From: Basidiobolus meristosporus CBS 931.73
Lineage: Eukaryota; Fungi; Basidiobolomycota
Length of the DNA: 64,000 nt
Assembly (NCBI GenBank): GCA_002104905.1
Contig: MCFE01000371.1
Coordinates: 1 to 64,000 of the forward strand
Direction: 5' to 3'
The position numbers and the translations under genes are program-made. The first letter of the stretch is position 1; the number at the start of each line of letters is the position of its first letter. The notes under the pieces are model-generated. The model was not told the origin of the DNA. It saw only the letters and a list, made by a program, of their open reading frames with translations, and did no database searches. This document shows positions 8,128 to 61,927 of this stretch, in pieces.

Positions 8128-8427
8128 TTATTTTTCTAGTACAATGGCGCTTTTTCCTGCAGATAGGTATCATCAGACGGAATACTTGAATGGATTTCTG
8201 AGGAGCAACGATGAGGCATTCGGGGGCTTTGATTTATTTATTCTCGTACCCACTAATATTCTATTATTGGCATTCCTTTCGGGTGTCCTTATTTTGCTAA
8301 TTAAGATCTACAAAGGCATCGATGGAATGGAAAGCAGCCTTCAATATACTAAGGACAAAACCTGTGCCTGTGCACACTCTGTGCTGTAAAGATGATGATA
8401 TCATTTCCGGACTTGAGACATATACAA

Positions 8428-8501
8428 GTCTTCGTGGTGTAGTTGGTTATCACGTCTGTCTAACACACAGACGGTCCTCGGTTCGAATCCGAGCGAAGAC
8501 A
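8428..8501 (+). tRNA. tRNA-Val(AAC), unit 3
   Basis: Copy of 1452-1525 (+6976). Confidence 0.94.
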
Positions 8502-8670
8502 TGTTTCTTTTAGTTTTTTGAGTACGCTTCGCATTTTGATCAACCATTAGAGTAATAGTTAAAAGTAGTATGCTTGAACTAAATACACGGCTGGTGGCCA
8601 GAATTTTATTGCGCTCAGTAACAAAAGGTTGAAAGCATAATGCAAATCAACTGGAGCGGAGCAAAAGAAG

Positions 8671-8742
8671 GGGCTCAACCGGGAATTGAACCCGGGACCT
8701 CTCCCACCCTAAGGGAGAATTATACCACTAAACCATTGAGCC
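8671..8742 (-). tRNA. tRNA-Pro(AGG), unit 3
   Basis: Copy of 1695-1766 (+6976). Confidence 0.94.
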
Positions 8743-8956
8743 GCTTACACATAGTCTCGTAATTAATGTTTATTTCAGAATATATTTTCTTAACACACTC
8801 ACTATCTTGATGGTTTATTTGTGCGAAAATAGTATGTTTCCGTAGAAACATCAAGGTATATGTCAGAGCAATACATAGACCCATTTGACAGCAAAAGTGT
8901 ATCTTCGCTTATCCATAGTATTGAAAATGGTATCTCTTGGATCCCACAATTGATAA

Positions 8957-9027
8957 GCCATTGTAGTATAGTGGCAGTACATCGCGTTGTGGCCGCGTCG
9001 ACCTCGGTTCGATTCCGAGCAATGGCA
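8957..9027 (+). tRNA. tRNA-His(GTG), unit 3
   Basis: Copy of 1981-2051 (+6976). Confidence 0.93.
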
Positions 9028-9347
9028 TTTCATTTTTCTTGCTACCCCAGGATTGATTCCTTCTTTTTCAAGGCAAAATGTACTTAATATGTTTAACTCG
9101 CGTTGATTTTTTTTTTGCAGACTCACCTCTGTTGAACCCTTCCCTAATATCAGCCAAGCCGGGTCTGGTATACCAATTACTGACACAGCTTGCTCATTTA
9201 AGACTACCCATAGATTTGCATGTTTGCATATATCTATAGTCAGCTCCACCGGTACACTCTAAAAATATGAAAGGTAGTTTCATACGAAATTTGGCATTCC
9301 CCTAACACAAATCATATTACTACCAGTTACCTAATCACTGGCAACAT

Positions 9348-9430
9348 GGTAACATGGCCGAGTTGGTCTAAGGCGCCGCACTCAAGTTGCGGTCTCGTAA
9401 GAGGCGTGAGTTCGAATCTCACTGTTACCA
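9348..9430 (+). tRNA. tRNA-Leu(CAA), unit 3
   Basis: Copy of 2372-2454 (+6976). Confidence 0.94.
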
Positions 9431-9894
9431 AATTCTTTTGGTCTTTTTGCTGATCGTTGAGCCTAGGCAATCGAATCGCCAACTATTAAATAGTGCGTTG
9501 TACTTTTCTTTTTGCTCCTTGATGATCTTCCGTACCAATAGGGAGTAGTTTGGGATTACATACCTGGTGATTGAGCACATCCGCAACAAAACGTTCGGAT
9601 TAGGGTTAGTTGAAGAACTTTAAATAAATCCCACCGCCTTGGAGTGATCTTTCAAGAATGGGCTCACCAAAAATTTCAGCAAACCGGGCATGGTAATTAG
9701 TGGTGGGGAGTGCGGTCCCTCGACCATAGCGGATGGGTTTGAACCACAATCGTAGCTGGTCGGAATCTGCAGCAATACCACCACGCCAGCACTGCTGTGG
9801 CCAATATGTTACTAGTAGTAACTCGTGTACCACTTATGAGTAGAGTAACCAGCAAGCCGGATAAGATAGCAACTTTAGAGAGTAGTGTATATCA

Positions 9895-9955
9895 GACAAT
9901 ATGCCGAGTGGTTAAGCGTATGACTAGAAATCATATGGCTCTGCCGCAGTCAATG
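9895..9955 (+). pseudogene. Corrupted, truncated tRNA-Ser(AGA) at the inversion junction (likely a sequence-quality artefact)
   Basis: Matches 2911 onward but with shortened homopolymers (ATATGCC, TTAAGCG, ATGGCTCTGCCGC) and no T-arm or 3' acceptor strand. Confidence 0.75.
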
Positions 9956-10249
9956 CTGTAGAACAGATAGAACATTACACAAATACTCAGGGTAAATACC
10001 AAAGCATACAAAACTTTGGTCGAATTCCCATTTGAGGTGTTCTATTTACCTTACCCAAGTACAGCCATCTCATAAAACTCTCCAAAAAGCACTAAAGGGC
10101 GCTTCTCTGGGATGAGCAAACAAGTATAAGGTAGCAAAGCCCATACCAGGGGGTTAAGGCGAACCGGGGCTGTCTCTCCGGAAACCCCATAGCTTGGTAA
10201 AGTGCACCACTTAAAAGCACCTTTAGCAGCTAAATAAAAAGTATAGGTG

Positions 10250-12165: not shown

Positions 12166-12465
12166 TTGTATATGTCTCAAGTCCGGAAATGATATCATCA
12201 TCTTTACAGCACAGAGTGTGCACAGGCACAGGTTTTGTCCTTAGTATATTGAAGGCTGCTTTCCATTCCATCGATGCCTTTGTAGATCTTAATTAGCAAA
12301 ATAAGGACACCCGAAAGGAATGCCAATAATAGAATATTAGTGGGTACGAGAATAAATAAATCAAAGCCCCCGAATGCCTCATCGTTGCTCCTCAGAAATC
12401 CATTCAAGTATTCCGTCTGATGATACCTATCTGCAGGAAAAAGCGCCATTGTACTAGAAAAATAA

Positions 12466-12537
12466 TTCCCCATCGGGGAATCGAACCCCGGCCGTCTCGG
12501 TGAAAGCGAGAAATCCTAACCACTGGACCAATGAGGA
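12466..12537 (-). tRNA. tRNA-Glu(TTC), inverted copy, with a Gypsy LTR 11 bp upstream
   Basis: Reverse complement of 1080-1151; 11-nt spacer 12538-12548, then LTR. Confidence 0.94.
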
Positions 12538-12548
12538 CTTTACTGTAC

Positions 12549-12858
12549 TGTTATGAATCGAGGGCAAGCGGAGGAGGACCGGAGGATGTCCAATACGAAT
12601 CAGAGAGGTTATCTGAATAGTTGATGAACCGGTAAAAGGTTGATGCTTTATTGATAGTGTTCAAAGGAGTTTATATAGAGATAGCCTCGGAGGGAGAGCT
12701 TCCGATAACGTAGGGCAAGCTTCCAAAAGGAGGGTTCAAGATGTATTAAATAACGTGTGTATCACTGAGTGCGATTGATCGTCTGTGTGGAATTCCAGGT
12801 GTTCGATCAGTAGTGTTCAAGTGATCGGTAGTGACTAGTTAGGATTTAAATCATAACA
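12549..12858 (-). repeat. 3' LTR of Gypsy copy A (310 bp)
   Basis: TGTTATGA...TCATAACA 8-bp inverted termini; reverse complement of 20912-21221. Confidence 0.96.
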
Positions 12859-12869
12859 TACTCCCACAC

Positions 12870-15800
12870 TTAAAGAGGTTCTTCTCCTGAAGAGTCCTGT
12901 CTATCGGACTTGTAATACCAGTATTTGGTTGGTGGTGTCATTGGGTTTTTTAGCTGTGCTTCCTTTAGTCGGTCTCTATGCACTAGGTCCTCCTTTACTT
13001 TACCTGACATGTCTGCGAGTTGAAATGTATTGAAGGGCATTTCTCTTGTGATAATAAAGGGTCCAACCCAATGTGGTTCTAGTTTTAGCCTACTTTCATT
13101 TCGGACTAATACAAGTTTTCCCAAAGTTAAGGGTTTTGTTACCACTGTTTTGTTGTACTGTTCTTTCATCTTCTCTGCTTGTCGTTTTAAATTCTTGATG
13201 GCATCATGTCTTGCATGTCCTAATTCTTCCAGTTCCCTTGTTCTGAATTCTGCCAAGTCTTTTTGGTTCTTTAAGTCCCAGATGTATGGTGGTAAGGTAT
13301 CACCTGGGATTCTTGGATGTGTACCATACACTAGGTAGAAGGGGGACTTTTGTGTTGCTGAATGGACTCTAATACGACAGGCAAAGAGTGCTTGATGTAC
13401 AAATTCATCCCACTTATGTTTGGCTCCTTTGACATAAGTAGTCAGCATCTTCCCAAAGAGTCCATTGAACCTCTCTGTGACCCCATTTGTTCTAGGGTGG
13501 TATGCTGATGTCTTCAAATGTCTAACCCCCATTATCTGAAGGTATTCTTTCAAGGTTTGTTCCAAAAAGTTTGCTCCTCTGTCAGACAGAATTTCACCTG
13601 GGCATCCAAACTGCATAAAGATTTCCAGGTAAAGGAATTTTGCAACATTTTTTGCAGTAGCTGCTGGCATGGCTTTTGCTATACACCACTTAGTGGTATG
13701 GTCAATTGCAGTTATGATCCACTTGTTCCCTCTTGAAGTTTCAGGCAATATTCCAATGAAGTCAATTCCCCATCTGTAGAATGCTGGAACTGGAGTCAGT
13801 GGTTCTAATGGGGCATGTTCCTTGTTGTATGGTCTAGCCAGCTGGCACTCAGGGCAGGTCTTGAGGGTCTCAGCTATAAATTGTTTGAGTTTAGGCCACC
13901 AGGCTCTCCTTTTAGTTATTTCATAAGTTCCTTGGATGCCCAGATGTCCAAAGGCTTTATGATTCTTGATTATCATGTCACCTCTGTATACAAATGGAAT
14001 ATATGGTACAGGCCCTATTTCTTCCATGTGTCTGTAAAGTACCTCGTCTTCACCATATGAGAAATTCTCTGCTTCTTTCTTAATCTTGACCCTTACTTCC
14101 TGTGATAAATCTTCTGGCATTGTCTGACTTGCCAAGTACTCTGGCATGTATTCTGGCCAGTCCAACTCATGATCTACCATTGATATATGTTGCCTTGAGA
14201 GTGCATCAGCAACTGTATTCTTTGGCCCAGGGAGGTAGTGGATTTTAAAATCAAATTGTTGTAGTTCTTCAATCCATCTAGTTATTCTTCTGGATAATAG
14301 CTTCTGGGTGTGAATGTATCTTAGGGATGCATGATCTGTATATACCACAAAGTGTTTGCCCTCCAAGTAGCATCTCCACACTCTCAGACAATGTAGTATG
14401 GCATAGAGTTCTTTTTCATGGACTGGGTAGTTTTGTTCAGTTACTGATAGCTTTTTGGACTCATAAGCAACCGGGTGTTCTTTTTGAGTCAGTACCCCTC
14501 CAACAGCTAGATCTGAAGCATCAGTGTATACACAGAAAGGTTCTGAGAAATCAGGCAACTGAAGCACAGGGGTTTGGCATAGCTTTTCTTTCAGAGTTAG
14601 GAAAGCTGTCTCACAGTTTGGGGTCCATATATAGTCTTTCTCTTTTTTGGTCAAGTCTGTAAGGGGGGCTGCAATAGTTGCAAAGTCCCTGATGAATCTT
14701 CTGTAATATGATGCAAGTCCCAGGAAGGATCTCATTTCAGTGAGTGACTTTGGGGCTTCCCATTTCTGGATAGCATCTATCTTGGCTGGATCCATGTGTA
14801 GTCCTTTATCTGAGATTATGTGACCAAGGTATTCAACTGATCTGGTGAGGAATTCACACTTAGGAAGTTGTGCATATAGCTTGTGCTTTTTTAGTATAGC
14901 CAGTACTGTCTTCAAGTGCTTCATGTGGTCATCCATGCTGGTACTATAGATCAGAATGTCATCTAAGTAGACCAGGACAAATTTCTCTAAATATGGTTCC
15001 AGGATGCTATTCATGAGTGTCTGAAATGTTGCTGGGGCATTAGTCAGGCCAAAGCTCATCACAACAAACTCATAATGACCATATCTTGTGTTGAATGCTG
15101 TCTTAGAGGTGTCTTCAGGCTTAATTCTGATTTGGTGATATCCAGATGCCAGGTCTATTTTAGAGAATATCTTTGCCTTCCCCAGTTGGTCAAAGAGGGC
15201 ATCAATTCTTGGTAATGGGTAGGAATTTCTGACAGTGATTGCATTTAGGGCCCTGTAGTCCACACAGAACCGTAGCTTCCCATCCTTCTTTGGAGCAAAG
15301 AGTACTGGAGCTCCCCATGGTGATTTACTGGGTTTTATCCAGCCTTTAGCCAGGTAGTCCTTCAATGTTTCCTTCAAAGTCTCCATTTCCTTTGGGGAGA
15401 ACTTATATGGGGCTCTGTTTCTTGGTTTATCATCTGTTACTTCTATGGCATGGTCAATCTCTCTGCTTGGGGGTAGTGCAGGGATTTCCTTGGGAAAAAC
15501 CTCTTGAAACTCTGCTAACAAGGTCTTGAGCCTGTCATTTGTCACTTCTGTGGTCTCTTGGATTTTGGCAAAGGCTATCATGTGCAACAGTTTGGGATTC
15601 TGTCTGATAGAGTGGGCAAACTGTTTCTTTGATATGGTGTGTTCTGGTGCATTGCCTTTGTCCAGGGTTGGTTTGGGTGACAGATGATATTTTGCATCAT
15701 CCTTGTTGATTACAACTTCCTGAGTCTGCCAGTTTATGTCAGGATTGTGCTTTCTTAGCCAAGTTTGTCCCACATTGATTTCAAAGTTGGCTTGGGGTAT

Positions 15801-16874
15801 GATAATTGGGGAAATGGTGTCTTGGAAGTCCCTGATTTGTAAAGTCAAGGGTTCAGTCCTGCTGTTCACTATAATTGATTCCTTGGTGGCACAGAGGATG
15901 TGAATTGGGGGGCAAGGGATTGTTTGTAGCTTCATCTGATCAGCTACATCTTTTGAAATGTAGACATCAGTTGCTCCACTGTCAATGAGTACAGAGACAC
16001 ATTGGTTGTTGTTGAGAATCCCTGGGAGTTTCAGCATCTTTGGGGTAGTATATAAGCTCTGAGTCCTCTGATACTCCTTAACAAGGCTGATTGTGTGCTC
16101 CTCCTCCTTAGTGGAGAGTTGGAATACTCTTTGTAATGGCCTCTTTGGGCATTCATTGACTTTATGACCCTGTTCCTTGCAGTAAAAGCATAGTCCAAGC
16201 TTGAAGCATTCCTCTTTAGAAGGTCTTGGTGTGCTCTGCATAACATCTAGGTCCATAGGCTCCAGTGTGTGGGGGTAGTGTGCACCTTGTTCAGTGATTG
16301 GTTGACTACCAATAGGTATGTGGTTATTGGCTTTGAGGCCTGTAGTAGTTCTTGAGTGACCAATTCTGTGGTTGACAGCCCTTCTGAAGTGTATGGCATC
16401 ATATCTTTCTGCCAGTTCCATAGCCTCTACTAGGGTTTTGGGGTCTTTGTATTCAATTTCCCATCTAGTGTTGGATTTCAGGCCTCTTAGGTATTGCTCA
16501 AGTAGTTCAGTATCAGGCATGTTTTGAATTTCCATACTAAGCAAGTTAAACTGCTCATTGTACTCTTGAACAGACTTGGCTTGAAAGAGTTTGGACAGTT
16601 TTTCTCTTGCCATTCTATCAGCATTGATAGGTGTAAACCTCTTTCTCAATGCTTTAACAAAGTCAGCCCAGGAGGCTATGGGTGGAAAGATGCCCCTATT
16701 CATTCCTTGAATGTGAAGTTTCCACCACATGGTTGCTTCCTTTCTGAAAAGTGAACAGGCATAATGTACTTTGACTTCTTCAGAGTCATCTGAGAAGTAT
16801 AGGTACTGCTCTACTTCAAATATCCAAGTCTCTAGAGTGGCAGTGTGTCTTTTGCCTTCAACCAGAAGAATCAA
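12870..16874 (-). CDS. Single-frame Gag-Pol polyprotein (N-terminus missing)
   Basis: PMDLD, CCHC knuckle [14 protein letters not shown], protease [19 protein letters not shown], RNase H YTDAS, integrase H-H-C-C, WGIDFIG / ILSDRG / [10 protein letters not shown] motif; no chromodomain; TTG start is at the junction and not real. Confidence 0.96.
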
Positions 16875-16939
16875 ACCTCATCCACCTTGAATCCTGGACT
16901 TCTACAACAAATCTGAAACTTCAGAAGAAAAGACACACT

Positions 16940-19900
16940 TCTAGAGACTATATTTGAAGTAGAGCAGTACTATACTTCTCAGATGACTCTGAAGAAGTCA
17001 AAGTACATTATGCCTGTTCACTTTTCAGAAAGGAAGCAACCATGTGGTGGAAACTTCACATTCAAGGAATGAATAGGGGCATCTTTCCACCCATAGCCTC
17101 CTGGGCTGACTTTGTTAAAGCATTGAGAAAGAGGTTTACACCTATCAATGCTGATAGAATGGCAAGAGAAAAACTGTCCAAACTCTTTCAAGCCAAGTCT
17201 GTTCAAGAGTACAATGAGCAGTTTAACTTGCTTAGTATGGAAATTCAAAACATGCCTGATACTGAACTACTTGAGCAATACCTAAGAGGCCTGAAATCCA
17301 ACACTAGATGGGAAATTGAATACAAAGACCCCAAAACCCTAGTAGAGGCTATGGAACTGGCAGAAAGATATGATGCCATACACTTCAGAAGGGCTGTCAA
17401 CCACAGAATTGGTCACTCAAGAACTACTACAGGCCTCAAAGCCAATAACCACATACCTATTGGTAGTCAACCAATCACTGAACAAGGTGCACACTACCCC
17501 CACACACTGGAGCCTATGGACCTAGATGTTATGCAGAGCACACCAAGACCTTCTAAAGAGGAATGCTTCAAGCTTGGACTATGCTTTTACTGCAAGGAAC
17601 AGGGTCATAAAGTCAATGAATGCCCAAAGAGGCCATTACAAAGAGTATTCCAACTCTCCACTAAGGAGGAGGAGCACACAATCAGCCTTGTTAAGGAGTA
17701 TCAGAGGACTCAGAGCTTATATACTACCCCAAAGATGCTGAAACTCCCAGGGATTCTCAACAACAACCAATGTGTCTCTGTACTCATTGACAGTGGAGCA
17801 ACTGATGTCTACATTTCAAAAGATGTAGCTGATCAGATGAAGCTACAAACAATCCCTTGCCCCCCAATTCACATCCTCTGTGCCACCAAGGAATCAATTA
17901 TAGTGAACAGCAGGACTGAACCCTTGACTTTACAAATCAGGGACTTCCAAGACACCATTTCCCCAATTATCATACCCCAAGCCAACTTTGAAATCAATGT
18001 GGGACAAACTTGGCTAAGAAAGCACAATCCTGACATAAACTGGCAGACTCAGGAAGTTGTAATCAACAAGGATGATGCAAAATATCATCTGTCACCCAAA
18101 CCAACCCTGGACAAAGGCAATGCACCAGAACACACCATATCAAAGAAACAGTTTGCCCACTCTATCAGACAGAATCCCAAACTGTTGCACATGATAGCCT
18201 TTGCCAAAATCCAAGAGACCACAGAAGTGACAAATGACAGGCTCAAGACCTTGTTAGCAGAGTTTCAAGAGGTTTTTCCCAAGGAAATCCCTGCACTACC
18301 CCAAGCAGAGAGATTGACCATGCCATAGAAGTAACAGATGATAAACCAAGAAACAGAGCCCCATATAAGTTCTCCCCAAAGGAAATGGAGACTTTGAAGG
18401 AAACATTGAAGGACTACCTGGCTAAAGGCTGGATAAAACCCAGTAAATCACCATGGGGAGCTCCAGTACTCTTTGCTCCAAAGAAGGATGGGAAGCTACG
18501 GTTCTGTGTGGACTACAGGGCCCTAAATGCAATCACTGTCAGAAATTCCTACCCATTACCAAGAATTGATGCCCTCTTTGACCAACTGGGGAAGGCAAAG
18601 ATATTCTCTAAAATAGACCTGGCATCTGGATATCACCAAATCAGAATTAAGCCTGAAGACACCTCTAAGACAGCATTCAACACAAGATATGGTCATTATG
18701 AGTTTGTTGTGATGAGCTTTGGCCTGACTAATGCCCCAGCAACATTTCAGACACTCATGAATAGCATCCTGGAACCATATTTAGAGAAATTTGTCCTGGT
18801 CTACTTAGATGACATTCTGATCTATAGTACCAGCATGGATGACCACATGAAGCACTTGAAGACAGTACTGGCTATACTAAAAAAGCACAAGCTATATGCA
18901 CAACTTCCTAAGTGTGAATTCCTCACCAGATCAGTTGAATACCTTGGTCACATAATCTCAGATAAAGGACTACACATGGATCCAGCCAAGATAGATGCTA
19001 TCCAGAAATGGGAAGCCCAAAGTCACTCACTGAAATGAGATCCTTCCTGGGACTTGCATCATATTACAGAAGATTCATCAGGGACTTTGCAACTATTGCA
19101 GCCCCCCTTACAGACTTGACCAAAAAAGAGAAAGACTATATATGGACCCCAAACTGTGAGACAGCTTTCCTAACTCTGAAAGAAAAGCTATGCCAAACCC
19201 CTGTGCTTCAGTTGCCTGATTTCTCAGAACCTTTCTGTGTATACACTGATGCTTCAGATCTAGCTGTTGGAGGGGTACTGACTCAAAAAGAACACCCGGT
19301 TGCTTATGAGTCCAAAAAGCTATCAGTAACTGAACAAAACTACCCAGTCCATGAAAAAGAACTCTATGCCATACTACATTGTCTGAGAGTGTGGAGATGC
19401 TACTTGGAGGGCAAACACTTTGTGGTATATACAGATCATGCATCCCTAAGATACATTCACACCCAGAAGCTATTATCCAGAAGAATAACTAGATGGATTG
19501 AAGAACTACAACAATTTGATTTTAAAATCCACTACCTCCCTGGGCCAAAGAATACAGTTGCTGATGCACTCTCAAGGCAACATATATCAATGGTAGATCA
19601 TGAGTTGGACTGGCCAGAATACATGCCAGAGTACTTGGCAAGTCAGACAATGCCAGAAGATTTATCACAGGAAGTAAGGGTCAAGATTAAGAAAGAAGCA
19701 GAGAATTTCTCATATGGTGAAGACGAGGTACTTTACAGACACATGGAAGAAATAGGGCCTGTACCATATATTCCATTTGTATACAGAGGTGACATGATAA
19801 TCAAGAATCATAAAGCCTTTGGACATCTGGGCATCCAAGGAACTTATGAAATAACTAAAAGGAGAGCCTGGTGGCCTAAACTCAAACAATTTATAGCTGA

Positions 19901-20900
19901 GACCCTCAAGACCTGCCCTGAGTGCCAGCTGGCTAGACCATACAACAAGGAACATGCCCCATTAGAACCACTGACTCCAGTTCCAGCATTCTACAGATGG
20001 GGAATTGACTTCATTGGAATATTGCCTGAAACTTCAAGAGGGAACAAGTGGATCATAACTGCAATTGACCATACCACTAAGTGGTGTATAGCAAAAGCCA
20101 TGCCAGCAGCTACTGCAAAAAATGTTGCAAAATTCCTTTACCTGGAAATCTTTATGCAGTTTGGATGCCCAGGTGAAATTCTGTCCGACAGAGGAGCAAA
20201 CTTTTTGGAACAAACCTTGAAAGAATACCTTCAGATAATGGGGGTTAGACATTTGAAGACATCAGCATACCACCCTAGAACAAATGGGGTCACAGAGAGG
20301 TTCAATGGACTCTTTGGGAAGATGCTGACTACTTATGTCAAAGGAGCCAAACATAAGTGGGATGAATTTGTACATCAAGCACTCTTTGCCTGTCGTATTA
20401 GAGTCCATTCAGCAACACAAAAGTCCCCCTTCTACCTAGTGTATGGTACACATCCAAGAATCCCAGGTGATACCTTACCACCATACATCTGGGACTTAAA
20501 GAACCAAAAAGACTTGGCAGAATTCAGAACAAGGGAACTGGAAGAATTAGGACATGCAAGACATGATGCCATCAAGAATTTAAAACGACAAGCAGAGAAG
20601 ATGAAAGAACAGTACAACAAAACAGTGGTAACAAAACCCTTAACTTTGGGAAAACTTGTATTAGTCCGAAATGAAAGTAGGCTAAAACTAGAACCACATT
20701 GGGTTGGACCCTTTATTATCACAAGAGAAATGCCCTTCAATACATTTCAACTCGCAGACATGTCAGGTAAAGTAAAGGAGGACCTAGTGCATAGAGACCG
20801 ACTAAAGGAAGCACAGCTAAAAAACCCAATGACACCACCAACCAAATACTGGTATTACAAGTCCGATAGACAGGACTCTTCAGGAGAAGAACCTCTTTAA
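16940..20900 (+). pseudogene. Gag-Pol of copy B split by two single-base deletions (ORFs 17042-18328, 18385-19038, 19008-20900)
   Basis: The three ORF pieces match the copy A protein; both breaks are at C homopolymers one base shorter than in copy A, so probably sequencing errors. Confidence 0.85.
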
Positions 20901-20911
20901 GTGTGGGAGTA

Positions 20912-21221
20912 TGTTATGATTTAAATCCTAACTAGTCACTACCGATCACTTGAACACTACTGATCGAACACCTGGAATTCCACACAGACGATCAATCGCA
21001 CTCAGTGATACACACGTTATTTAATACATCTTGAACCCTCCTTTTGGAAGCTTGCCCTACGTTATCGGAAGCTCTCCCTCCGAGGCTATCTCTATATAAA
21101 CTCCTTTGAACACTATCAATAAAGCATCAACCTTTTACCGGTTCATCAACTATTCAGATAACCTCTCTGATTCGTATTGGACATCCTCCGGTCCTCCTCC
21201 GCTTGCCCTCGATTCATAACA
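20912..21221 (+). repeat. 3' LTR of Gypsy copy B (310 bp)
   Basis: Preceded by PPT-like AAGTGTGGGAGTA (20899-20911); TGTTATGA...TCATAACA; TATATAAA 21093-21100; AATAAA 21118-21123. Confidence 0.96.
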
Positions 21222-21227
21222 CTCTCG

Positions 21228-21345
21228 AGCATCGGCCATACATACCAGAAAATACCGGATCCCGTCCGATCTCCGAAGTCAAACTGGTAATGGCCTAGTC
21301 AGTACTACGGTGGGGGACCACGTGGGAATACTAGGTGCTGATGTT
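21228..21345 (+). rRNA. rrn5: 5S rRNA
   Basis: AGCATCGGCCATAC...CCCGTCCGATC...AGTACTACGGTGGGGGACCACGTGGGAATACTAGGTGCTGATGT; helix I closes; TTTT terminator; collinear with known fungal 5S. Confidence 0.96.
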
Positions 21346-21539
21346 TTCTTCCGAATTGCTCCACTACACAATACTCTTTTGCTTCTGTTATGTGTGCGTG
21401 TGTCTGTTCTTCCTTTGCTACTGCTGTCTTTGGTATAAAAGAGTTTGCTTTCCAGATACAATGCTGCTCTCTATTCCCTAGTCATTATTGCTGAAGGGCA
21501 ATTTTAGATAGTATATATAAGAAAGGGTTGTCGTATAAT

Positions 21540-21612
21540 GCCTCCTTGGCTCAGTTGGCAGAGCGTCTGCCTAGTAAGCAGAAGGTCGCTGGTTCGATTC
21601 CGGCAGAAGGCA
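21540..21612 (+). tRNA. tRNA-Thr(AGT)
   Basis: GCCTCCT...AGAAGGCA (one C-A mismatch); TCTGC-CTAGTAA-GCAGA. Confidence 0.92.
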
Positions 21613-21805
21613 TGTTTTACATGTTGAACCTTTTATACTTTTATACTTGTACAAGAAAATGTCTTTATTGTCTACTTCAAAGGGCTGTGCTAAGCATCCA
21701 AATGTTCAAAACATTAAGTGGCCGTTGCCCATGTCATTTACTAAATCTGGCTTTGGCTCTTATGTGACTCTTGAGTAAAAGCAAGCAAAATTACTCCAAA
21801 AGCAA

Positions 21806-21888
21806 TGAAGAGAGTGGGATTCGAACCCACGCCTCCGAAGAGATCACGGCCTTAACGTGACGCCTTAGACCAACTCGGCCATCTCTCC
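21806..21888 (-). tRNA. tRNA-Leu(AAG)
   Basis: Minus GGAGAGA...TCTCTTCA; TCACG-TTAAGGC-CGTGA; long variable arm. Confidence 0.95.
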
Positions 21889-22127
21889 ATTCTTGTGGTT
21901 TGTTTACCATCGTTCTAAATGTCAATTTAACTTACCCGCCATTTAGATCAAAATCTATTGCTCGCCGTTGGTGGCTTAGTCAGGTAAGTGCAATTATAGG
22001 AGCTCTCCACGTACCTGCTGTCTCATTATAGACTTTTTTTGTAACGCAGTTGATTAACAAGCTAGTAACGGTGCTATTGTACAATTTATCTCCATATTAT
22101 ATTTTAAATCAGGATCAAATAACAAAA

Positions 22128-22212
22128 CCGAACATAGCTCAGTTGGTAGAGCGGAAGACTGTAGTGTTATATAGCAATCTTTAGGTCCCTGGTTCAAATC
22201 CGGGTGTTCGGA
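22128..22212 (+). tRNA. tRNA-Tyr(GTA) with a 12-nt intron (22165-22176)
   Basis: CCGAACA...TGTTCGGA; GAAGA-CTGTAG-[TGTTATATAGCA]-A-TCTTT; canonical 37/38 intron position. Confidence 0.94.
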
Positions 22213-22502
22213 ATTTTTGGTTTGTGCAAACCCTATTCCTACGGGTATCACTTGTGGGTAGAGCCTTGCAGCAAAGGCTCGCCTTTTTCTTGTTGGATGT
22301 GGCTCTTTACATACGATATTTGCAATACTTTATGTTATTGCTTTACCACCGTATCTGCAATGGTTTTAAGAAATATTGGCCCTTCCCATAGTGCATTGCC
22401 CTAAGTATACAATTTTTGCTTTGTTGCCCCTGAACGATTGCTTCCTTTTTGATACTTGTTGGTGGGAATACCGGTTGCCAGGGAAAACAAAATATAAAAA
22501 TG

Positions 22503-22576
22503 CGCTCCTGGGTGGGCTTGAACCACCAACCTCCTGATTAACAGTCAGACGCGCTAGCCAATTGCGCCACAAGAGC
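22503..22576 (-). tRNA. tRNA-Asn(GTT)
   Basis: Minus GCTCTTG...CAGGAGCG; TCTGA-CTGTTAA-TCAGG. Confidence 0.95.
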
Positions 22577-22887
22577 TTCAACTGACAAACGTTGGTTTCT
22601 CAAAATACTTGTATCAGTGTTCATCTTGGTTGATAGAAGCATTTGCATAAAACTAGCTTAGCAAGGATTCTCTGGATGGTGCACCTGCCTCCCAAAGTCA
22701 GCCATATCAGTATGTTCTATGCCGGGTGGATTCCCTAACCCGACGGTTTCCATAATTCTTTGAAGCATCACGGAAATCATCTTTTAAGCGTTTGATAACC
22801 ACTGTAGAATGGCAAACTCCGACCATATAGGAAACCAACACTTGACAAAAACGACATATTCCATTAAAACTTTGTACACTCAATAAG

Positions 22888-22960
22888 GCCCGGCTAGCTC
22901 AATCGGTAGAGCGTGAGACTCTTAATCTCAAGGTTGTGGGTTCGACCCCCACGTTGGGTG
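22888..22960 (+). tRNA. tRNA-Lys(CTT)
   Basis: GCCCGGC...GTTGGGTG; TGAGA-CTCTTAA-TCTCA. Confidence 0.96.
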
Positions 22961-23102
22961 ATGTATATTTTTTATTCTTTGTTTTTCACTTTCCTGGAAT
23001 TGAGCAATAATTTTTGTGTTTTGAACGGTTGTCTGTATATGATATTTAAGCCGGATAGTGATATGGAAGAATGAAACAATGAATCCCAATAGAGTAATTA
23101 TT

Positions 23103-23174
23103 GGACGTATAGCTCAGTGGTAGAGCAATTGACTGCAGATCAATAGGTCGGTGGTTCAAATCCGCCTGCGTCCT
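23103..23174 (+). tRNA. tRNA-Cys(GCA)
   Basis: GGACGTA...TGCGTCCT; ATTGA-CTGCAGA-TCAAT. Confidence 0.95.
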
Positions 23175-23294
23175 CATCTTTTTTGCTAATTGAAGCGTTC
23201 ATTAAAATACAATTTCGCCTAGCCACCAATTACATCTACTCACATAAATATAGCATTCAAAAGATTGATGAAATTCATTTAGAATAATCCAAAA

Positions 23295-23367
23295 TGGAGG
23301 ACCTGGGTATCGATCCCAGTGCCTCTCGCATGCTAAGCGAGCGCTCTACCATCTGAGCTAGACCCCC
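23295..23367 (-). tRNA. tRNA-Ala(AGC)
   Basis: Minus GGGGGTC...GTCCTCCA with G3-U70; CTCGC-TTAGCAT-GCGAG; T-loop ATCGATA. Confidence 0.94.
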
Positions 23368-23757
23368 ATATATATACACCTCGGTGGAAAACCACTTATC
23401 TTTTTTAATTCTTCAATAGATGTACTCGCATGGCAAAGAAAATACTGGCTAGCATTGAATTGAGGACCCTGTTAACAATGGTAATGTGTATGTCTCTTAT
23501 TATCAACTTTGTGCGATCAAGGGGGCATTCATTGATGTATGACTGATGGCTATTTTGGAGCATTTTTGTTATCCACACTACAGATGCTTTTGTTTCTTTC
23601 GGTTTGTTAATAGAAATCTCTCTGTGGCTACGCTATTAAGAGCTTCTGCCGTTTTCCCATATATAGCGCAATCTAGAAGTACACTAAATGTGAAAAGTAA
23701 TCAAGCCTAACAGATCAGATTTCCGTATTTTCTAAGACGGTTGTTTGCACTGGTACT

Positions 23758-23829
23758 GGCTCAATGGTTTAGTGGTATAATTCTCCCTTAGGGTGGGAGA
23801 GGTCCTGGGTTCAATTCCCAGTTGAGCCC
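23758..23829 (+). tRNA. tRNA-Pro(AGG) variant
   Basis: Identical to the array Pro(AGG) except T-stem CTGGG/CCCAG in place of CCGGG/CCCGG. Confidence 0.9.
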
Positions 23830-23839
23830 TTCTTTTGTT

Positions 23840-25660
23840 TGTTTTCCTGTCAAAATGGATTGTTAGTAAGAATGGGGTACTCTGAGCTGCAGCAGCAATT
23901 AATGTTGTGGATTCCCCTTGGTAATTCTTGATTGACAAGTAATGTAAAAATGCAATTTTTCCATCACAACAGAGCCCATCCTCCAAAGTTAAGCATCTGT
24001 TGTGGGCACATATCTTGAGTTTTCAGCTGTAACTTTTGTTCCAAGTCTGCCAAAATAATACTACAGTTTGTCCAAGTGTCTATAACAACCAGATATTGCT
24101 TCTTGTTGATACTTATAAGTATTTGTGCTACCTGAATATCCTCTTGTGGTTGTTCCTCAGCCTTTTCTTGTATATTATTCATATGTTGCTCCATGTGGTT
24201 TAACTCTTGCTTCAACATAGGCTACTTTAAAAGACTTCAAATTGGAACAGGGATTTCCTGATTCCTTATTTGGTTTGCAACTTGGGTGACATCCATTAGT
24301 GTTGTTATGCCAGATGGTTTTATTGTTCCCCCTCCAGTTTCTATTATCATGCATTCCATTTTTGGGGATTCATCCTTTGTATCCATTGACTTTTTTCTAA
24401 CATATATATAGAATCTGTCATGTCTTCTACTATGTTGACTTTGGAATGGCTCCTATATTTGCCTTCCTCTTGCAAGGTATTTCCTTCTCTTTGTGTATTT
24501 GCTACTACAGTTGGTACTAACTTGAAATAAGGACAATTCCTCAAGATATGTCTGGGTTCTCCACAACCAAAGCATCTTTGTTCCCTTCTTGGAGGGTTGT
24601 GGTTTGAACTGGGGATAGAACTAGAATTTGTCTTCTGACTGGCTAACAAATTAAGTTCCATTCAATCAAATTTAGCTGCCAGTTTATCCAGTTGACTATC
24701 CCATGATGTTGTTGGTGGAGTTAATAATAGTGCATGTGTTTTCTCATTGATATTCTCCCTTGTAGGGCCTCCTAGACATTGTTCCTCCTCCTCAGCAAAA
24801 GCAATTGCTTCACCCAGAGTTGTGGGTCTACATTTTCTGACCTCCATCTGGATCTCAGAGTGAAGAACATTGAGAAACTTTGATCTTATCTTCCTCCAGT
24901 GAGTATCCCAACCTTGCAAATAATCTTAATACTTATGTGGCAATTTCTGCTACTGATTCATCTTTCTGTCATAAATTCATCAGGTTTGACACCATGCATC
25001 CATTTGTGCCATTGTGACATATTTTTCCTTGAATCTTTGCTTAATGGTTTCCCAATCTGTCAAAAGCCCTTCACTTTCTTCTTACCTAGTAGCTGCTAGT
25101 TCCTTCATGTAAGCACCTGCAATTGTTGGAAGATCTGCTAGATCCCATCAATTTGCCTTTTGACTTACTTCACATTCCTGTAGCCAAGCAATAGGATATT
25201 TGGTCTGATATCCCAAGAAATTGCTAATTGTGACCAGTCTTTGTTCCCATTGTAGCATGGACATCTTCTGTTCTTTTTGTAAGAGATAGATTCCTTTTGT
25301 TTAATACTACCCCCTGCTGTGAGCACTAATTCTGTTATGTACTTAAAGAGTAATGTCCTTTAGAGAGTACAAAAAGGGATAATATGTATGTTATCTTGTA
25401 GATTTGACAGGGTAGTGTAAGAATATCTCTTTAAAAGGTTAGGGTGTTGACCTTGTAGAAATATATTTAAGCTAGTTTTTGCTCCCACTATGCTTTTCTG
25501 CCTATAACCAAAAACTCCCTTTTTACTTAGTTGCTTGTTTGATATTTATACCTTACTGTGAGTCTGGTGATTTGTCTTTGATTTGCTTTTCCCTGACTAC
25601 TAAGTTGTCTTTGTATGTGTTGATGTCACTTAACATCAAGTGACTCTTTACTCTGTAACA
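23840..25660 (-). mobile_element. Degenerate Ty3/Gypsy-like relic (older family): 5' LTR, gag, protease fragment
   Basis: Broken frames with KCRPTTLGEAI, CCHC CFGCGEPRHILRNC and protease-like YLVVIDT; LTR at 25333-25660; almost no CpG. Confidence 0.8.
25333..25660 (-). repeat. 5' LTR of the older Gypsy relic (328 bp)
   Basis: TGTTA...TAACA termini; homologous to 30127 onward; TATAAAT on minus strand; PBS-like tract on the gag side. Confidence 0.75.
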
Positions 25661-25670
25661 ACTCAATAAG

Positions 25671-25743
25671 GCCTGGCTAGCTCAATTGGTAGAGCATGAG
25701 ACTCTTAATCTTAAGGTTGTGGGTTTGACCCCCACATTGGGTG
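25671..25743 (+). pseudogene. tRNA-Lys(CTT) pseudogene
   Basis: Five CpGs changed to TpG/CpA, including T-loop TTCGA to TTTGA (B-box damage). Confidence 0.9.
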
Positions 25744-25886
25744 ATGTATATTTTTTATTCTTTGTTTTTAACTTTCCTGGAATTGAGCAATAATATTTGT
25801 GTTTTGAATGGTTGTCTGTATATGATATTTAAGCCAGATAGTGATATGGAAGAATGAAACAACAAATCCCAATAGAGTAATTATTG

Positions 25887-25924
25887 GACATATAGCTCAG
25901 TGGGTCAAATCCACCTGCATCCTC
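25887..25924 (+). pseudogene. tRNA-Cys(GCA) pseudogene with internal deletion
   Basis: GGACATATAGCTCAGTGG joined to GTCAAATCCACCTGCATCCT; anticodon arm missing. Confidence 0.85.
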
Positions 25925-26043
25925 ATTTTTTTTGCTAATTGAAGCATTCATTAAAATACAATTTTGCCTAGCCACTAATTGCATCTACTCACATAAATAT
26001 AGCATTCAAAAGATTGATGAAACTCATTTAGAATAATCCAAAA

Positions 26044-26116
26044 TGGAGGGCCGGAGTATTGATCCCAGTGCCTCTTGCATGCTAAGCAAGCACTCTACCA
26101 TCTGAGCTGGACACCC
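26044..26116 (-). pseudogene. tRNA-Ala(AGC) pseudogene
   Basis: Copy of 23295-23367 with four CpG transitions and stem mismatches. Confidence 0.88.
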
Positions 26117-26126
26117 ATATATATAC

Positions 26127-26361
26127 TGTTGAAGTATGTACTACCAAGGGTGTTAACCAGAGATTGGTGTTCAAAGGTTGAGGCTGGAAGGAAAGACTGC
26201 TTTATTTTCTAACATGTTTTGCTAATTTATACTTTGGTGAACTACATTTGCTATATGCATGTCTTAGCCATTTTGCCTAATTTTGGTAATACTCAATGGA
26301 TGGTTCAGGGGTAGGTCTCCAGTTGTGATGGTTTGAAGATGCTGATGACCTTACCACAACA
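26127..26361. mobile_element. Solo LTR (235 bp), unclassified family
   Basis: Absent from the intact copy; TGTTG...CAACA termini; flanks ATAC/ATGC resemble a 4-bp TSD with one mismatch. Confidence 0.72.
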
Positions 26362-27423
26362 ATGCACCTTGGTTGAAAACCACTTATCTTTTTTAATTCT
26401 TCAAATTTTGTTGCCCATGTCATTTACTAAATTTGGCAACTTTGTAAGTATTACACTGAAATCTGTAAAGTTGAGGTGATAGAAGTTTGTCAATTGCAGT
26501 TGGTGTGCACATATACAGAGGCTAATAGACTTGTTTGATTGTACCATGCCATGGTGTGTAGCATAGAGTTTGGTTGTTTAGAACAATTGGGTGTAATATT
26601 GTAGCTACCAGTAGGCAGGATTGCTCTTGGACCATTTTCATTTTATGGGACAATATTGCACACTATGGTACAATCTGACATTATTGATTTTTTGTACCTT
26701 TGATTTGTATTTCAAGGATCATGGCTTAAATGCTTTTTGAAATAACTATAAGATGTTTGTAACTTTCTTGTAATAAAATGCTTTTTTAAATTTTTTCAAA
26801 ATTAGAAACTATTGATTTAAAAGCATTTGGCACTTACTTCAAAATCTTTAGAATCTTGTGTGCAGCAATAATAATCTGATAGTACAGAATTTTCTTAGAT
26901 GACCACTTTTATTTTTTAGAGCAAATATATATCTAGATGATAATATCTTAATTTTGAAAGAAATTTCCAACACCTACTTTGATGTTGGTTAAGACTTTTT
27001 TATGTAGCCATTTTTGGGTTAAGCCAGACTTTTCCAGCTGCTAAATATTTAACCTAGTTTGAATGAAGCTTTTTCCCAATAATAAACTTTTGATTTCAAC
27101 AAAAGCTATTTCCAAGATGTAAAATTCTCTTAAGCTCTTTTAGTTTTCACCAAAAATACTTTTAAGATGTGAGAAGTCTCTAGACAACAAGCTGTGTCAC
27201 ATGTATAGTGAATATTTTCAGTATGATAAGAGTTTTTTAAATCTAACCAAAAATATTTCCAAGATGCTAAAAGTTTTGAGATGACAAGCTTGGGCTAAGA
27301 TCAAGCAAGTATTTAAAGTATTGACCAATGCAGATATATCATACAAAAAAGTATTTGGATAAAAAAATGATTGACATAAAGTTTGTAAAAAAGAATTTTT
27401 GGTCCAACAACTAACCTTTGATT

Positions 27424-27772
27424 TGTTGTAAAAATTCGTATTTCCACCTAAATAGTCACCTAACTTAGTCACTTAGATCATCACCTTCAAATCCTAGAGA
27501 ATACTGACCAAATTCCTTGTCGGGATTTACTTAGAATATTTTCACCAAAATACCAGGTACCCAGAGCATCAAAATTCTCAAAGTTGGCCAAACAGCCCCA
27601 AACTTTGCACACATGTTCTTGGGACCTTCCTTAACCTATTCTACGTGTTTGTAATGCCAAGATCAGGTAAAAGTATAAATACTACTTTTACATTCAATAA
27701 ATCATTAAGTGAAAACCACATAATCTACTTGTTCTCCAAATCACTTCCAATATCTCCAAGACTCTTACAACA
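27424..27772 (+). mobile_element. Copia-family solo LTR
   Basis: 349 bp, TGTTGTAA...TTACAACA, TSD TGATT, homologous to 56512-56860. Confidence 0.93.
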
Positions 27773-28899
27773 TGATTCACCACCCTTACATATATAAGCC
27801 ATTACATTCTTGTTTGTACTATAGGTCTTGCTTTTTTCATGCTACAATTATCTTCTCACAACTTCACCCAATTAGTTAACTTATCCTTTTTAGAAACCCC
27901 ACACTGAAAACACCAATGATACAAGAAGCATATGACTGGGCAGAACTACTACCTGGACACTTGGAATCAAGAATTTTTTCTCCACAGACTATACTAGAAA
28001 TCCAAAGAAAAGTGACAGAAAACAGCAGATAACCCACTGAAGACCATGAGGTAGTCTACAAGGTAGTAGAGTAATATATATATCCCACAGACAAGTTTAT
28101 TTATATAGTTGTTATAGTTCATTTGTCAGTATTTATCTTATCAGTATTATCTCATTCTGCTTTGCCCATATTATCAGTATTATCCCTATATGATATTCAC
28201 CATGATGTGTTGTTGGCATTAGTTATCCCAACTGTTATTCAGCTTTGTGATCTGCAGATGTATTTACATTAGGCAGGTATCCATATCAGTACCCACAACA
28301 TATGATCTATATCTGTATAACCATCTCTAGCATTGAGAACTATATATGGTTTATCTATGCCATAGGTGATTCAAACTACTGATCCCTGATTATTTGGATG
28401 TATTGTGCCTTTTAGTACCTTCTAGAACCTTCTCAAAGTATTTTGAGCTCAAAGTGATGTCATCATAAGTATAAATGATGCCTGAAATCTTCTATAACCT
28501 TGTCATTAGTAATTACTTGGCCATCTGGAAATGTATTTAAGGGAAGTCAATATCCCATCAATAAATCATCTCTCTATCAGTGACAGTGGCCCCTCATTGA
28601 TTAGTAGCTAATCACTGCACCAATCTTCAGCAATTACACCTTGCACTATGCATAAAGGAGCTTCTCACAGTAGTGCACAAGACACACAGAGGTCTTTGGA
28701 GACACTTGGAGCACCTAGGATGCCAGAGAAGCTGGTGCTTTTACCAGAGTGACATATTGACAGAGACACTGCAGTTTAGACCCAGATATTATTGCCCCCA
28801 TCAGACACCTCACACCCTGTGAGTTGTGTACCTTCTCCCACATGTACCTCTACACCACCACAACAAGAAAGCTAGTGCAGGAAATGTATCATATGTACC

Positions 28900-29503
28900 A
28901 TTTGTCATGAGAGCAGACTTGATAGCCAAGTACCAACATGGATTTGGACATCTGGGGTCAAGGGACCACACAAATAGTATCTAGAAATGTTTAGTGACCC
29001 AGAATGTCAGAAGACATAAAGCACCTTGCCCATAGTGGCCAAGAGTGCCAGCTCACCCAAAATGCTCAGCTGAACAACTTGCAAATGTACCCTATACCAC
29101 CTGACAAACCATTTCACAGATGGCCACTTGACTTCATTAGGATTTTGCCCAAAACAAGTTCTAGAAAGTAGTATGTCCTGGTGAGGATTGTTTGTTGTAC
29201 TAAATGGCAGTTTCAAGAGCACTCAAAGAAGCAAGCCAAAACAAAATAGCCTGGCTCATATATGAGGAAATAGTGATGCAGTATGGAGGCCCAGCCAAGA
29301 TTTTGACAGACAGAGGTGCCAATTTCATTGCAAAATATTCTGGGACACCACTAGGAGTTACTGAACATCACTACCTCCAGACTTTGGCCTACCATCTACA
29401 GACTAATGGAGTCATAGAGATACTCAATGGACTCTTTGGAAGAATGCCAACTAAACACTGTAAAGGAGCTATACATAAATGGGATCTACTACTGCAGAAT
29501 TAG
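28900..29503 (+). pseudogene. Gypsy integrase relic
   Basis: Broken frames with GHLG, PFHRWPLDFI, EIVMQYGGPAKILTDRGANF, QTNGVIEILN. Confidence 0.82.
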
Positions 29504-29559
29504 TTGACATAAAGAAAAAACTGTAAATATATTTACATGATGCATTTTCTTACTCACAT

Positions 29560-30405
29560 GTCCCTTGCCTGACCTCCTATATATGGCTCCATCTCCTTGG
29601 TAAAAGCTTTTGCTTCACACAGAGCTGTGGGTTTACATTTTCTGGCCTCCAATTAGGCCCTATGTAGAATAGTATCAAGAACTCTTAGATCCTATCTTTA
29701 TCCAAAGAGCTTGAAATCTTGAGAGCAGTATCAATACTTCTGTGATAGTTTCTGCTATTGATTCATCATTGTCTAATAAATCCCTCACATTTGCCACCAT
29801 GCATCAGTTCTTGCCATTGTAGCATATATTTCTTTCAATCATTGCTAAAAGGCTCCCATTGTGTTAAAGGTTTTTTGTTTTCTTTGTACCAAGAAGCTGT
29901 CAGATCCTTTATATAAGCACTTGATATCACTGAATGATCCCATCAATTTGCCTTTTGACTGACTTCACATTCCCATAGCCAAGCAATAAGATCTGTGGTC
30001 TGGTAATCCAAGAAATCACTGATTGTGACCAATCTTTGTTCCTGTTATAGTATGATAATCACCTGTTTGTCTTTTAAGAGATGGAATCTTTTTGCTTAGT
30101 ATTACCCCTGCTTTGAGTACCAGTTCTGTTTCATGCTTACAGAGCATTATCCTTTAGGGAATATGGAAGTAAATAGTGGGAATGTGTCATGTAGATTTGA
30201 CAGGGTTATGTAAGAATATCTCTTAAAAGACCAGGATGGTGAATTGTAGATTTCTTTCAAGGTAGTAGTCTCTTGTACTGTTCTTCCTACTTTGAACCAA
30301 ACATGTTGTTCATTTGATTGTTTGATTGGTATTTATACCTTATTTTATGTCTAATGATTTGTCTCTATTAATTGAGCCAGCTGGAATTCTCTAAGCTGTG
30401 TAGAC
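29560..30405 (-). mobile_element. Second relic of the older Gypsy family (gag 5' part plus LTR)
   Basis: Aligns to about 24790-25640; PBS-like TGGTACTCAAAGCAGGGG (30105-30122, minus) 4 nt from the LTR edge at 30127; outer limits approximate. Confidence 0.75.
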
Positions 30406-61906: not shown

Positions 61907-61927
61907 GTAACAAAGGCATCATGCAAA

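Follow-up and report, generated by a model that had tools for sequence, protein, structure and literature searches.

Ty3/gypsy long terminal repeats of several families abut the start regions of RNA polymerase III genes in Basidiobolus meristosporus

Why do the ends of long terminal repeats (LTRs) of different sequence lie only a few bases in front of genes that RNA polymerase III (Pol III) transcribes? This question is raised by a stretch of 64,000 nucleotides of the Basidiobolus meristosporus CBS 931.73 genome (assembly GCA_002104905.1, contig MCFE01000371.1, positions 1 to 64,000; hereafter the window), in which we called Pol III genes with ARAGORN and Rfam. An earlier note on this DNA had observed LTR ends set just before Pol III genes, and our analysis confirms this observation. 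Two copies of a young Ty3/gypsy family, carrying LTR1, abut a tRNA-Glu and a 5S rRNA gene, and the old, decayed LTR2 and LTR3 stand right beside a tRNA-Lys gene and a tRNA-Ala gene, respectively. We consider it very probable that several Ty3/gypsy LTR families of this fungus aim their integration at the first bases upstream of the Pol III start.

LTR1 of the minus-strand copy ends 11 nt upstream of tRNA-Glu(TTC), LTR1 of the plus-strand copy ends 6 nt before position 1 of the 5S rRNA, LTR2 ends 10 nt upstream of a decayed tRNA-Lys(CTT), and LTR3 sits 10 nt upstream of a tRNA-Ala relic (Table 1). Both the coordinates and the empty sites described below agree with the distances of 11, 6, 10 and 10 bp that the earlier note had given for these edges. 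Also in agreement with that note, which had distinguished three LTR sequences, BLAST detected no similarity among LTR1, LTR2 and LTR3 except at their termini, which are TG...CA in each case. LTR1 carries a TATA box and AATAAA. LTR3 is bordered by a target duplication of 4 bp (ATAC at 26123-26126 and ATGC at 26362-26365). LTR2 can be assigned as the 3' LTR of an older gypsy element because the DNA in front of it and the sequence downstream of an integrase (IN) remnant at 28880-29497 are 72% alike. This remnant (plus strand) and another one at 58657-59652 (minus strand) are decayed gypsy integrases that are 24-30% identical to the young element and its relatives, and their DNA is devoid of CpG.

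Empty sites inside the window fix two of the junction boundaries to the base. Three forward units of a tRNA array read ...GAAGAGTACAGTAAAG immediately followed by tRNA-Glu, with array sequence in the place of the LTR. The region 25661-26404 is a decayed duplicate of a 540-bp tRNA block located at 22878-23416 (block A), and block A shows the unoccupied tRNA-Ala site and also marks the boundary between LTR2 and tRNA-Lys. The empty sites at tRNA-Glu and in block A therefore indicate that the LTRs arrived second, and the alternative that Pol III genes were moved next to the LTRs is rejected by them.

Chance placement was rejected as well, its probability being 1.3e-6 or lower. When the whole window is considered, the probability of finding all four edges at 4-15 bp upstream of a Pol III gene is 5.5e-9; when insertions are confined to tRNA-dense DNA, which is the kind of random insertion that the earlier note had named as speaking against targeting, it is 1.3e-6. 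A fifth junction is present on a 742-base contig of the public short-read run X2, which bears a different organism label within the same study. On this contig the LTR1 end is followed by TTTCCAGGTT (10 nt) and then by GGCTCAATGGTCTAGTAGTA, a 20-mer that matches the first 20 bases of the tRNA-Pro genes in the window, from their first base, with one or two mismatches. Together, the Basidiobolus junctions thus total five, located at positions -11, -6, -10, -10 and -10 of Glu, 5S, Lys, Ala and Pro genes, respectively, and they constitute independent insertions a few bases before different Pol III genes of both the tRNA and the 5S type. Wherever the orientation is readable it matches that of the Pol III gene, the three LTR1 junctions and the LTR2 junction all being forward.

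Elements that are placed alike were found in other hosts. No match above 55% identity over most of the query was obtained with the full protein, in a 1200-aa search of 1.8 billion representatives or with a 300-aa integrase piece, and an Atlas search returned only gypsy clusters of a generic kind that carried no taxa. Among full-length relatives, the nearest share 42-49% identity, and all of these lack a chromodomain. The contigs of relatives P0125, P0175, P0289 (Lichtheimia), P0285 and P0163 either were not long enough, broke off at the element or came from unrelated hosts, and an ENA contig was likewise cut. A gypsy family of Entomortierella parvispora (Mortierellomycota; GCA_020891255.1, with proteins such as GJJ75631.1 and GJJ68159.1) has a pol identity of 42%, and all six genomic copies retrieved (L003, L004 and L006-L009) lie upstream of tRNA genes, with gaps of 14, 14, 14, 15, 15 and 34 bp and with tRNA-Glu, Asn, Leu, Leu, Ser and Asn as targets. 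Each of the six copies is flanked by a single tRNA gene, which is on the opposite strand just outside the 5' LTR. Their LTRs measure 608 bp in every copy, the LTR pairs of the four aligned copies are 100% identical, a 4-bp target duplication is perfect in five of the six, and the primer-binding site (PBS) reads TGGTAGCA. To judge by sequence, the Entomortierella family has been recently active. Its integrase has about 160 more residues beyond the C-terminal domain (CTD). Beside the targeted tRNA-Leu of copy L003 we observed a 279-bp tandem repeat of four to five copies (L003:466-1739).

A metagenomic relative, L005 (ENA ERZ27292800 k141_190535), is 44% identical, and its 3' LTR ends 4 nt before a 5S gene that runs in the same direction (L005:5501-5765). 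A channel gene near this element is 35% identical to a Paramicrosporidium saccamoebae protein, which is a hint only. In a maximum-likelihood tree of 47 gag-pol proteins, which was rooted arbitrarily and did not include Ty3, Tj1, Tf1, DGLT-A or Skipper, the Basidiobolus, Entomortierella and L005 elements form one clade with eleven more chromodomain-less proteins (SH-like approximate likelihood-ratio test, SH-aLRT, 99), the internal order of which is not resolved. A separate clade of 30 proteins (SH-aLRT 100) comprises chromodomain-bearing plant and Dikarya hits and vertebrate elements. The tree supports the view that the Basidiobolus lineage is not a recent offshoot of the chromovirus-type hits.

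With these relatives at hand we can consider whether insertion might be random, or weakly biased, and only the copies next to Pol III genes survived. Regions upstream of Pol III genes are harmless, and in a transposon-rich genome many insertions will have been filtered. Survival, however, cannot yield the single-base precision observed (-10/-11 at four tRNA genes, -6 and -4 at 5S genes) or a fixed orientation; 15 kb of decayed repeats away from genes demonstrate that random insertions do persist, and the young Entomortierella copies are at tRNA genes in six out of six cases. We therefore regard this explanation as very improbable.

The young element itself deserves closer description. The region 12549-21221 is a near-perfect palindrome, each arm of which is one Ty3/gypsy element running inward from its 3' LTR, and both arms are truncated at the 5' side, so that the window contains no 5' LTR, PBS or gag start. 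The earlier note had described a young element with an open, CpG-poor reading frame of 1334 codons: the frame is as described, but there is no single intact element, only two inverted, 5'-truncated copies whose join has no short-read support. Pfam domains on the 1334-aa frame are, in order, a Ty3-type capsid, a zinc knuckle, an aspartic protease, reverse transcriptase, RNase H, an integrase zinc finger and the integrase core; the capsid match starts at position 18 of its profile, and the frame extends into the centre of the palindrome. Compared with the minus arm, the plus arm shows one single-nucleotide polymorphism (20186) and has lost one nucleotide in each of two C runs (after 18298 and after 19015); these two losses split the frame into pieces of 428, 217 and 630 aa. 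Next to the centre, the plus arm also has four small deletions compared with both the minus arm and the short-read contigs. A purine tract, GTGTGGGAG, precedes the 3' LTR. In full-length copies, which are seen in read contigs only, the LTR is followed by T and then TGGTAGCAGCG..., the PBS, also given as TGGTAGCAG..., which we take to fit the 3' end of initiator tRNA. The domain order, LTR ends, PBS, purine tract and short target duplication are those of Ty3/gypsy elements (Metaviridae), and the best match among solved structures is Ty3 Gag-Pol (7q5b; E 1.8e-141).

Contigs of four public short-read runs were aligned to positions 12300-17000. One contig of run X2, 4619 bp long, shows zero differences from the minus arm over 12813-16861 and then continues with 570 bases of other sequence, and the same continuation is found before 16905 in contigs of three runs (X1, X2 and X4), whereas no contig of the four runs crosses 16862-16904. 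The short-read contigs thus depict an ordinary full-length element and not the palindrome join. A second inversion, in the tRNA array, joins unit offset 2964 forward to offset 3659 reverse next to a degraded stretch (9806-9959); identity is 98% over the last 650 bases before this flip in an array that is otherwise perfect. The palindrome centre and the array flip appear to be unconfirmed fold-back joins and are possibly misjoins, and either a rearrangement or an assembly error accounts for the two LTR1 copies standing head to head.

These joins raise the possibility that the adjacency of LTRs and Pol III genes is itself an artefact of a repeat-rich long-read assembly. In its favour are the two fold-back-like joins (9946-9959 and 16862-16904) with their degraded neighbouring sequence, and the fact that short-read contigs continue into genuine upstream element and not across the palindrome centre. 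A misjoin, however, would not end precisely at the terminal CA of an LTR, would not recreate the array's own 11 nt before tRNA-Glu and would not produce the 4-bp duplication of LTR3; moreover, the contig with the LTR1 end 10 nt before tRNA-Pro comes from a separate sample. We consider such an artefact extremely improbable. The doubts about the fold-back joins leave the LTR/Pol III junctions untouched because these junctions lie kilobases inside each piece. Similarly, the missing contigs across the tRNA-Glu/LTR1 junction and the palindrome centre are no evidence of absence, since the flanking repeats are longer than the assembler's word.

The remainder of the window is organized as follows. Positions 1-9945 are a tRNA array, in which a 3488-bp unit with ten tRNA genes is repeated head-to-tail, units 1 and 2 being identical. 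The array orientation flips at 9946-9959, and the inverted part reaches 12548, its last gene being tRNA-Glu(TTC). A mixed cluster of eight tRNA genes lies 3' of the 5S rRNA gene and ends at 23829; within it, ARAGORN called a tRNA with the four-base anticodon 'gtag' at 22128-22212 (Rfam, 59.9 bits), which is probably an intron-containing tRNA-Tyr(GTA). Decayed repeat DNA occupies approximately 24000-31200 and 55000 to the end of the window, and ordinary genes with 50-60% G+C lie between these two stretches. Block B, the decayed twin of block A, has a tRNA-Cys with a 34-nt internal deletion (25892-25925, compared with 23103-23175); its tRNA-Cys and tRNA-Ala are Pol III genes that died within the repeat island.

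Table 1. Coordinates of the LTRs, Pol III genes and associated features in the window
Feature	Coordinates	Strand	Remarks
tRNA-Glu(TTC), intact	12466-12537	-	ARAGORN/Rfam; final gene of inverted array part; target of LTR1 copy 1; score same as three array copies
11-nt spacer, tRNA-Glu 5' end to LTR1 end	12538-12548		GTACAGTAAAG in tRNA orientation; same 11 nt before tRNA-Glu in three empty array units
LTR1, 3' LTR of minus-strand copy	12549-12858	-	310 bp; TGTTATGA...TCATAACA
gag-protease-reverse transcriptase-RNase H-IN frame	12870-16874	-	Open, 1334 codons; N-terminus cut by palindrome centre
Palindrome centre	16862-16904		43 nt in neither copy
Plus-strand copy of same element	16905-20911	+	
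LTR1, 3' LTR of plus-strand copy	20912-21221	+	
5S rRNA gene	21228-21346	+	Rfam, 108.6 bits
Block A	22878-23416		Intact tRNA-Lys(CTT), tRNA-Cys, tRNA-Ala(AGC); empty-site reference for LTR2 and LTR3
tRNA-Ala, intact twin of relic 26044-26116	23296-23367		In block A
3' internal remnant, older gypsy of LTR2 family	24734-25333	+	72% alike to 29540-30135
LTR2	25334-25660	+	327 bp; TGTTATGT...CTGTAACA
Block B, decayed twin of block A	25661-26126		tRNA-Lys, deleted tRNA-Cys, tRNA-Ala relic
tRNA-Lys(CTT), decayed	25671-25743	+	ARAGORN/Rfam; block B
tRNA-Ala relic	26044-26116	-	Block B; sub-threshold in Rfam (25.6 bits)
LTR3, solo LTR	26127-26361		235 bp; TG...CA ends; TGTTGAAG...CCACAACA
TGTTGTAAAA...CTCTTACAACA repeat copies	27354-27772, 30783-31180, 56508-56860, 60994-61345, 61522-61916, 61927-62275, 63636-63979		

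How could integration be guided to these positions? As for Ty3, the intasome would most likely dock onto DNA bound by TFIIIB immediately upstream of the start site. The integrase of the young element aligns to Ty3 IN up to the end of the CTD, after which 28 residues remain. The similarity of this region to Ty3 is weak (E 3.6e-24 over 394 residues in the search of solved structures; 22% identity over the model in Foldseek). A structural model built with 26 aligned relatives (predicted local distance difference test, pLDDT, 79.7, compared with 32 for a single-sequence fold) contains an N-terminal extension domain (NED), an N-terminal domain (NTD), a catalytic core domain (CCD), a linker helix of 40 residues and a CTD with an SH3-like fold, the tail being disordered, and in Foldseek the integrases of prototype foamy virus (PFV) and Ty3 ranked first. 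The predicted CCD-CTD linker helix is extended (residues 264-303) and is followed by a beta-barrel (314-365), an arrangement of the Ty3 type. No match to the chromodomain profile PF00385 was found in the 1334-aa frame, and no chromodomain in the seven closest relatives; the chromodomain at the IN C-terminus that characterizes chromoviruses is thus absent. As the integrase ends 28 residues after the CTD, there would be no room for a chromodomain that clamps Brf1, and the contact must therefore differ in detail from that of Ty3.

Since the chromodomain is missing, integration aimed at Pol III genes might instead be tethered by a factor other than TFIIIB, for example TFIIIC, a Pol III subunit or a feature of the DNA or chromatin, in which case the resemblance to Ty3 would be convergent. 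Ty1 is tethered through the Pol III subunit AC40. In agreement with such a tether, the integrase lacks the chromodomain that in Ty3 staples IN to Brf1 (PMC8632968), and the authors of the Tj1 study too saw no similarity to Ty3 IN that would explain targeting (PMC4600332). In addition, the orientation is forward in LTR1, LTR2 and L005 but reverse in Entomortierella, and these opposite fixed orientations suggest that docking geometries differ within the clade. On the other hand, a precision of a few bases at both tRNA and 5S genes is the behaviour of the TFIIIB-guided elements Ty3 and Tj1, whereas a tether of the Ty1 type yields a window of about 1 kb and no point (PMC5911963), and the long CCD-CTD linker helix that allows the Ty3 CTD to reach TFIIIB is present in the model. 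We regard a tether other than TFIIIB as possible but rather unlikely.

Several observations weigh against targeting as proposed here, or against its Ty3-like mechanism. The Basidiobolus sample is limited to five junctions, and no other Basidiobolus copies of the family were found in public protein and contig collections. No short-read contig bridging the tRNA-Glu/LTR1 junction was found in the four runs, and the degraded sequence at the palindrome centre together with the array inversion means that this region of the assembly may be partly chimeric. Position is the one sign of docking on TFIIIB, and the vestigial chromodomain that in Ty3-type docking follows the CTD was not found. Finally, another LTR-like repeat of 350-420 bp (TGTTGTAAAA...CTCTTACAACA) is present in seven copies that are 75-95% alike, none of which adjoins a recognisable Pol III gene in the window; these repeats may belong to a family that lacks such targeting, or they may be old insertions stacked upon one another.

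The elements are also remarkable for their CpG content. LTR1 holds 13 CpGs in its 310 bp (observed/expected ratio, o/e, 1.08) and the element interior 9 in 4003 bp (o/e 0.05), with TpG plus CpA raised in the interior (o/e 1.32). Arginine is encoded by 64 AGR and 5 CGN codons, and 3 C|G codon junctions are observed versus about 83 expected. With increasing distance from the Pol III-proximal end (12549-16861) the CpG o/e is 1.08, 0.33, 0.16 and then near zero, and DNA close to the Pol III gene may be protected by it from repeat methylation. The o/e is 0.78 in the tRNA arrays, 0.80 in host genes and 0.00-0.07 in older repeats, in line with the earlier claim that the arrays keep their CpGs while adjacent repeats lose them; the old LTR2 and LTR3 have zero CpG. 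In block B, 17 of the 18 CpGs have changed to TpG or CpA, versus 16 other substitutions. The copy agrees fully with the short-read consensus and its frame is open; the depletion has therefore been inherited along the lineage and is not decay of the copy in the window. Judging from base composition, the best explanation is that methylated repeat DNA of this host decays by CpG-specific C-to-T change and that, in the lineage of the element, this decay would have built up while selection favoured an open frame. A CDCA7-type protein, which the literature links to maintenance of 5-methylcytosine, has been reported for B. meristosporus (PMC10538959).

It is unlikely that the CpGs were lost through a duplication-triggered mutator resembling repeat-induced point mutation (RIP) instead of through decay of methylated CpG. 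Both RIP-like signals and genes for DNA methylases have been described from the related Entomophthorales (PMC11105155), and the 310-bp LTR could lie below the length threshold of such a mutator. RIP does not fit, however, because perfect 3.5-kb repeats keep their CpG: the 3488-bp array units are 100% identical and retain the array ratio, while the 540-bp tRNA block duplicated in the repeat island lost all but one of its CpGs. In addition, the change is CpG-specific and has not struck all long repeats, TpG and CpA are raised whereas they are lowered in Neurospora RIP, and LTR2 and LTR3, which are short and old, have lost every CpG. The purge of CpG from the element is thus real, as the earlier note had stated, and it is peculiar to this host. 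The further proposal of that note that the purge resists decay was not supported, as the loss looks like host CpG C-to-T mutation and CpG is normal (0.92) in the Entomortierella relatives; that the purge protects the element is an idea and not a result. The Pol III arrays may, we infer, act as a safe harbour.

Taken together, the data allow a broader proposal, which we put forward tentatively: targeting of Pol III start sites might be ancestral in a chromodomain-less Ty3/gypsy clade of early-diverging fungi (Zoopagomycota, Mortierellomycota and perhaps others), whose elements would dock on the pre-initiation complex without the chromodomain staple of Ty3 and with an orientation fixed per family. 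In Basidiobolus the Pol III gene may also be a methylation barrier, which would explain the drop of CpG o/e with distance from 1.08 through 0.33 and 0.16 to zero.

The Pol III-aimed gypsy elements known so far, Ty3, Ty3p, Tj1, Tca8/beta, Tyl3, Ylt1, Tyl6, DGLT-A and Skipper-2, all belong to ascomycete yeasts or dictyostelids (PMC5911963, PMC5006619). In agreement with the earlier supposition that such targeting is undescribed for this kind of fungus, we found no report of Pol III-aimed gypsy elements in early-diverging fungi, Basidiobolus or Mortierella in the literature of open papers. Pol III targeting as such is known from Ty3, Tj1 and DGLT-A; new are the host phyla and the chromodomain-less clade, in that Ty3/gypsy elements of several families stand at Pol III start regions and relatives in early-diverging fungi are placed alike. 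Our surprise is tempered by a 2018 review, in which Pol III targeting was already anticipated to be common among fungi. Studies of such targeting by LTR elements have dealt with budding yeast, fission yeast and Dictyostelium, and it is usually explained as an adaptation to compact genomes. Its presence in several families of a large, repeat-rich genome of an early-diverging fungus, and in relatives from another early-diverging phylum, suggests a habit of greater age and wider spread in fungi than the compact-genome argument implies. An integrase without a chromodomain is also a natural comparison for finding the essential contacts with the Pol III machinery, and the contrast in CpG between LTR and coding DNA in a copy with an open frame offers a handle on how the host marks and mutates repeats.

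Among the relatives, the Entomortierella family shares with the Basidiobolus elements the chromodomain-less clade, the 4-bp duplication and the placement at tRNA genes, but its 5' LTR faces the tRNA gene in divergent orientation, its gap to the tRNA gene is 14-15 bp (34 bp in one copy), its LTR is 608 bp long, its integrase is longer and its CpG is normal. DGLT-A and Skipper-2 of Dictyostelium resemble the elements described here in being gypsy-type, aimed at tRNA genes and resident in a non-yeast host (PMC5006619, PMC5911963). Their host, however, is an amoebozoan, and their insertions spread over a broader and less exact target window than those of the Basidiobolus elements; Skipper-2, whose chromodomain is diverged, goes in downstream of tRNA genes.

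Ty3 of Saccharomyces cerevisiae is the best solved match for both pol and IN, and start-site integration, the linker helix and the SH3-like CTD are common to both elements. The initiator-tRNA-type PBS is presumably shared as well. The target duplication of Ty3 is 5 bp. Ty3 inserts 1-4 bp before the start site (PMC5911963), and its integrase reaches TFIIIB by a long linker helix, the CTD and a vestigial chromodomain, the CTD being in contact with TBP and the vestigial chromodomain with Brf1 (PMC8632968). In Ty3 this vestigial chromodomain follows the CTD, whereas the Basidiobolus integrase has a 28-residue tail only, and Ty3 inserts in both orientations, whereas the LTR1 and LTR2 junctions are all forward. 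Insertions of Tj1 of Schizosaccharomyces japonicus at tRNA genes lie 5-11 bp ahead of the mature 5' end, for the most part at -10 or -11, and one 5S gene has an insertion at -3, the orientation of Tj1 always being that of the Pol III gene (PMC4600332). The Basidiobolus LTR1 and LTR2 junctions match Tj1 in both position and orientation; the two differ in that Tj1 generates a duplication of 5 bp instead of 4 bp, has gag and pol split by a stop codon where the Basidiobolus element has a single fused frame, and resides in an ascomycete yeast with a compact genome, whereas the genome of Basidiobolus is large and rich in repeats.

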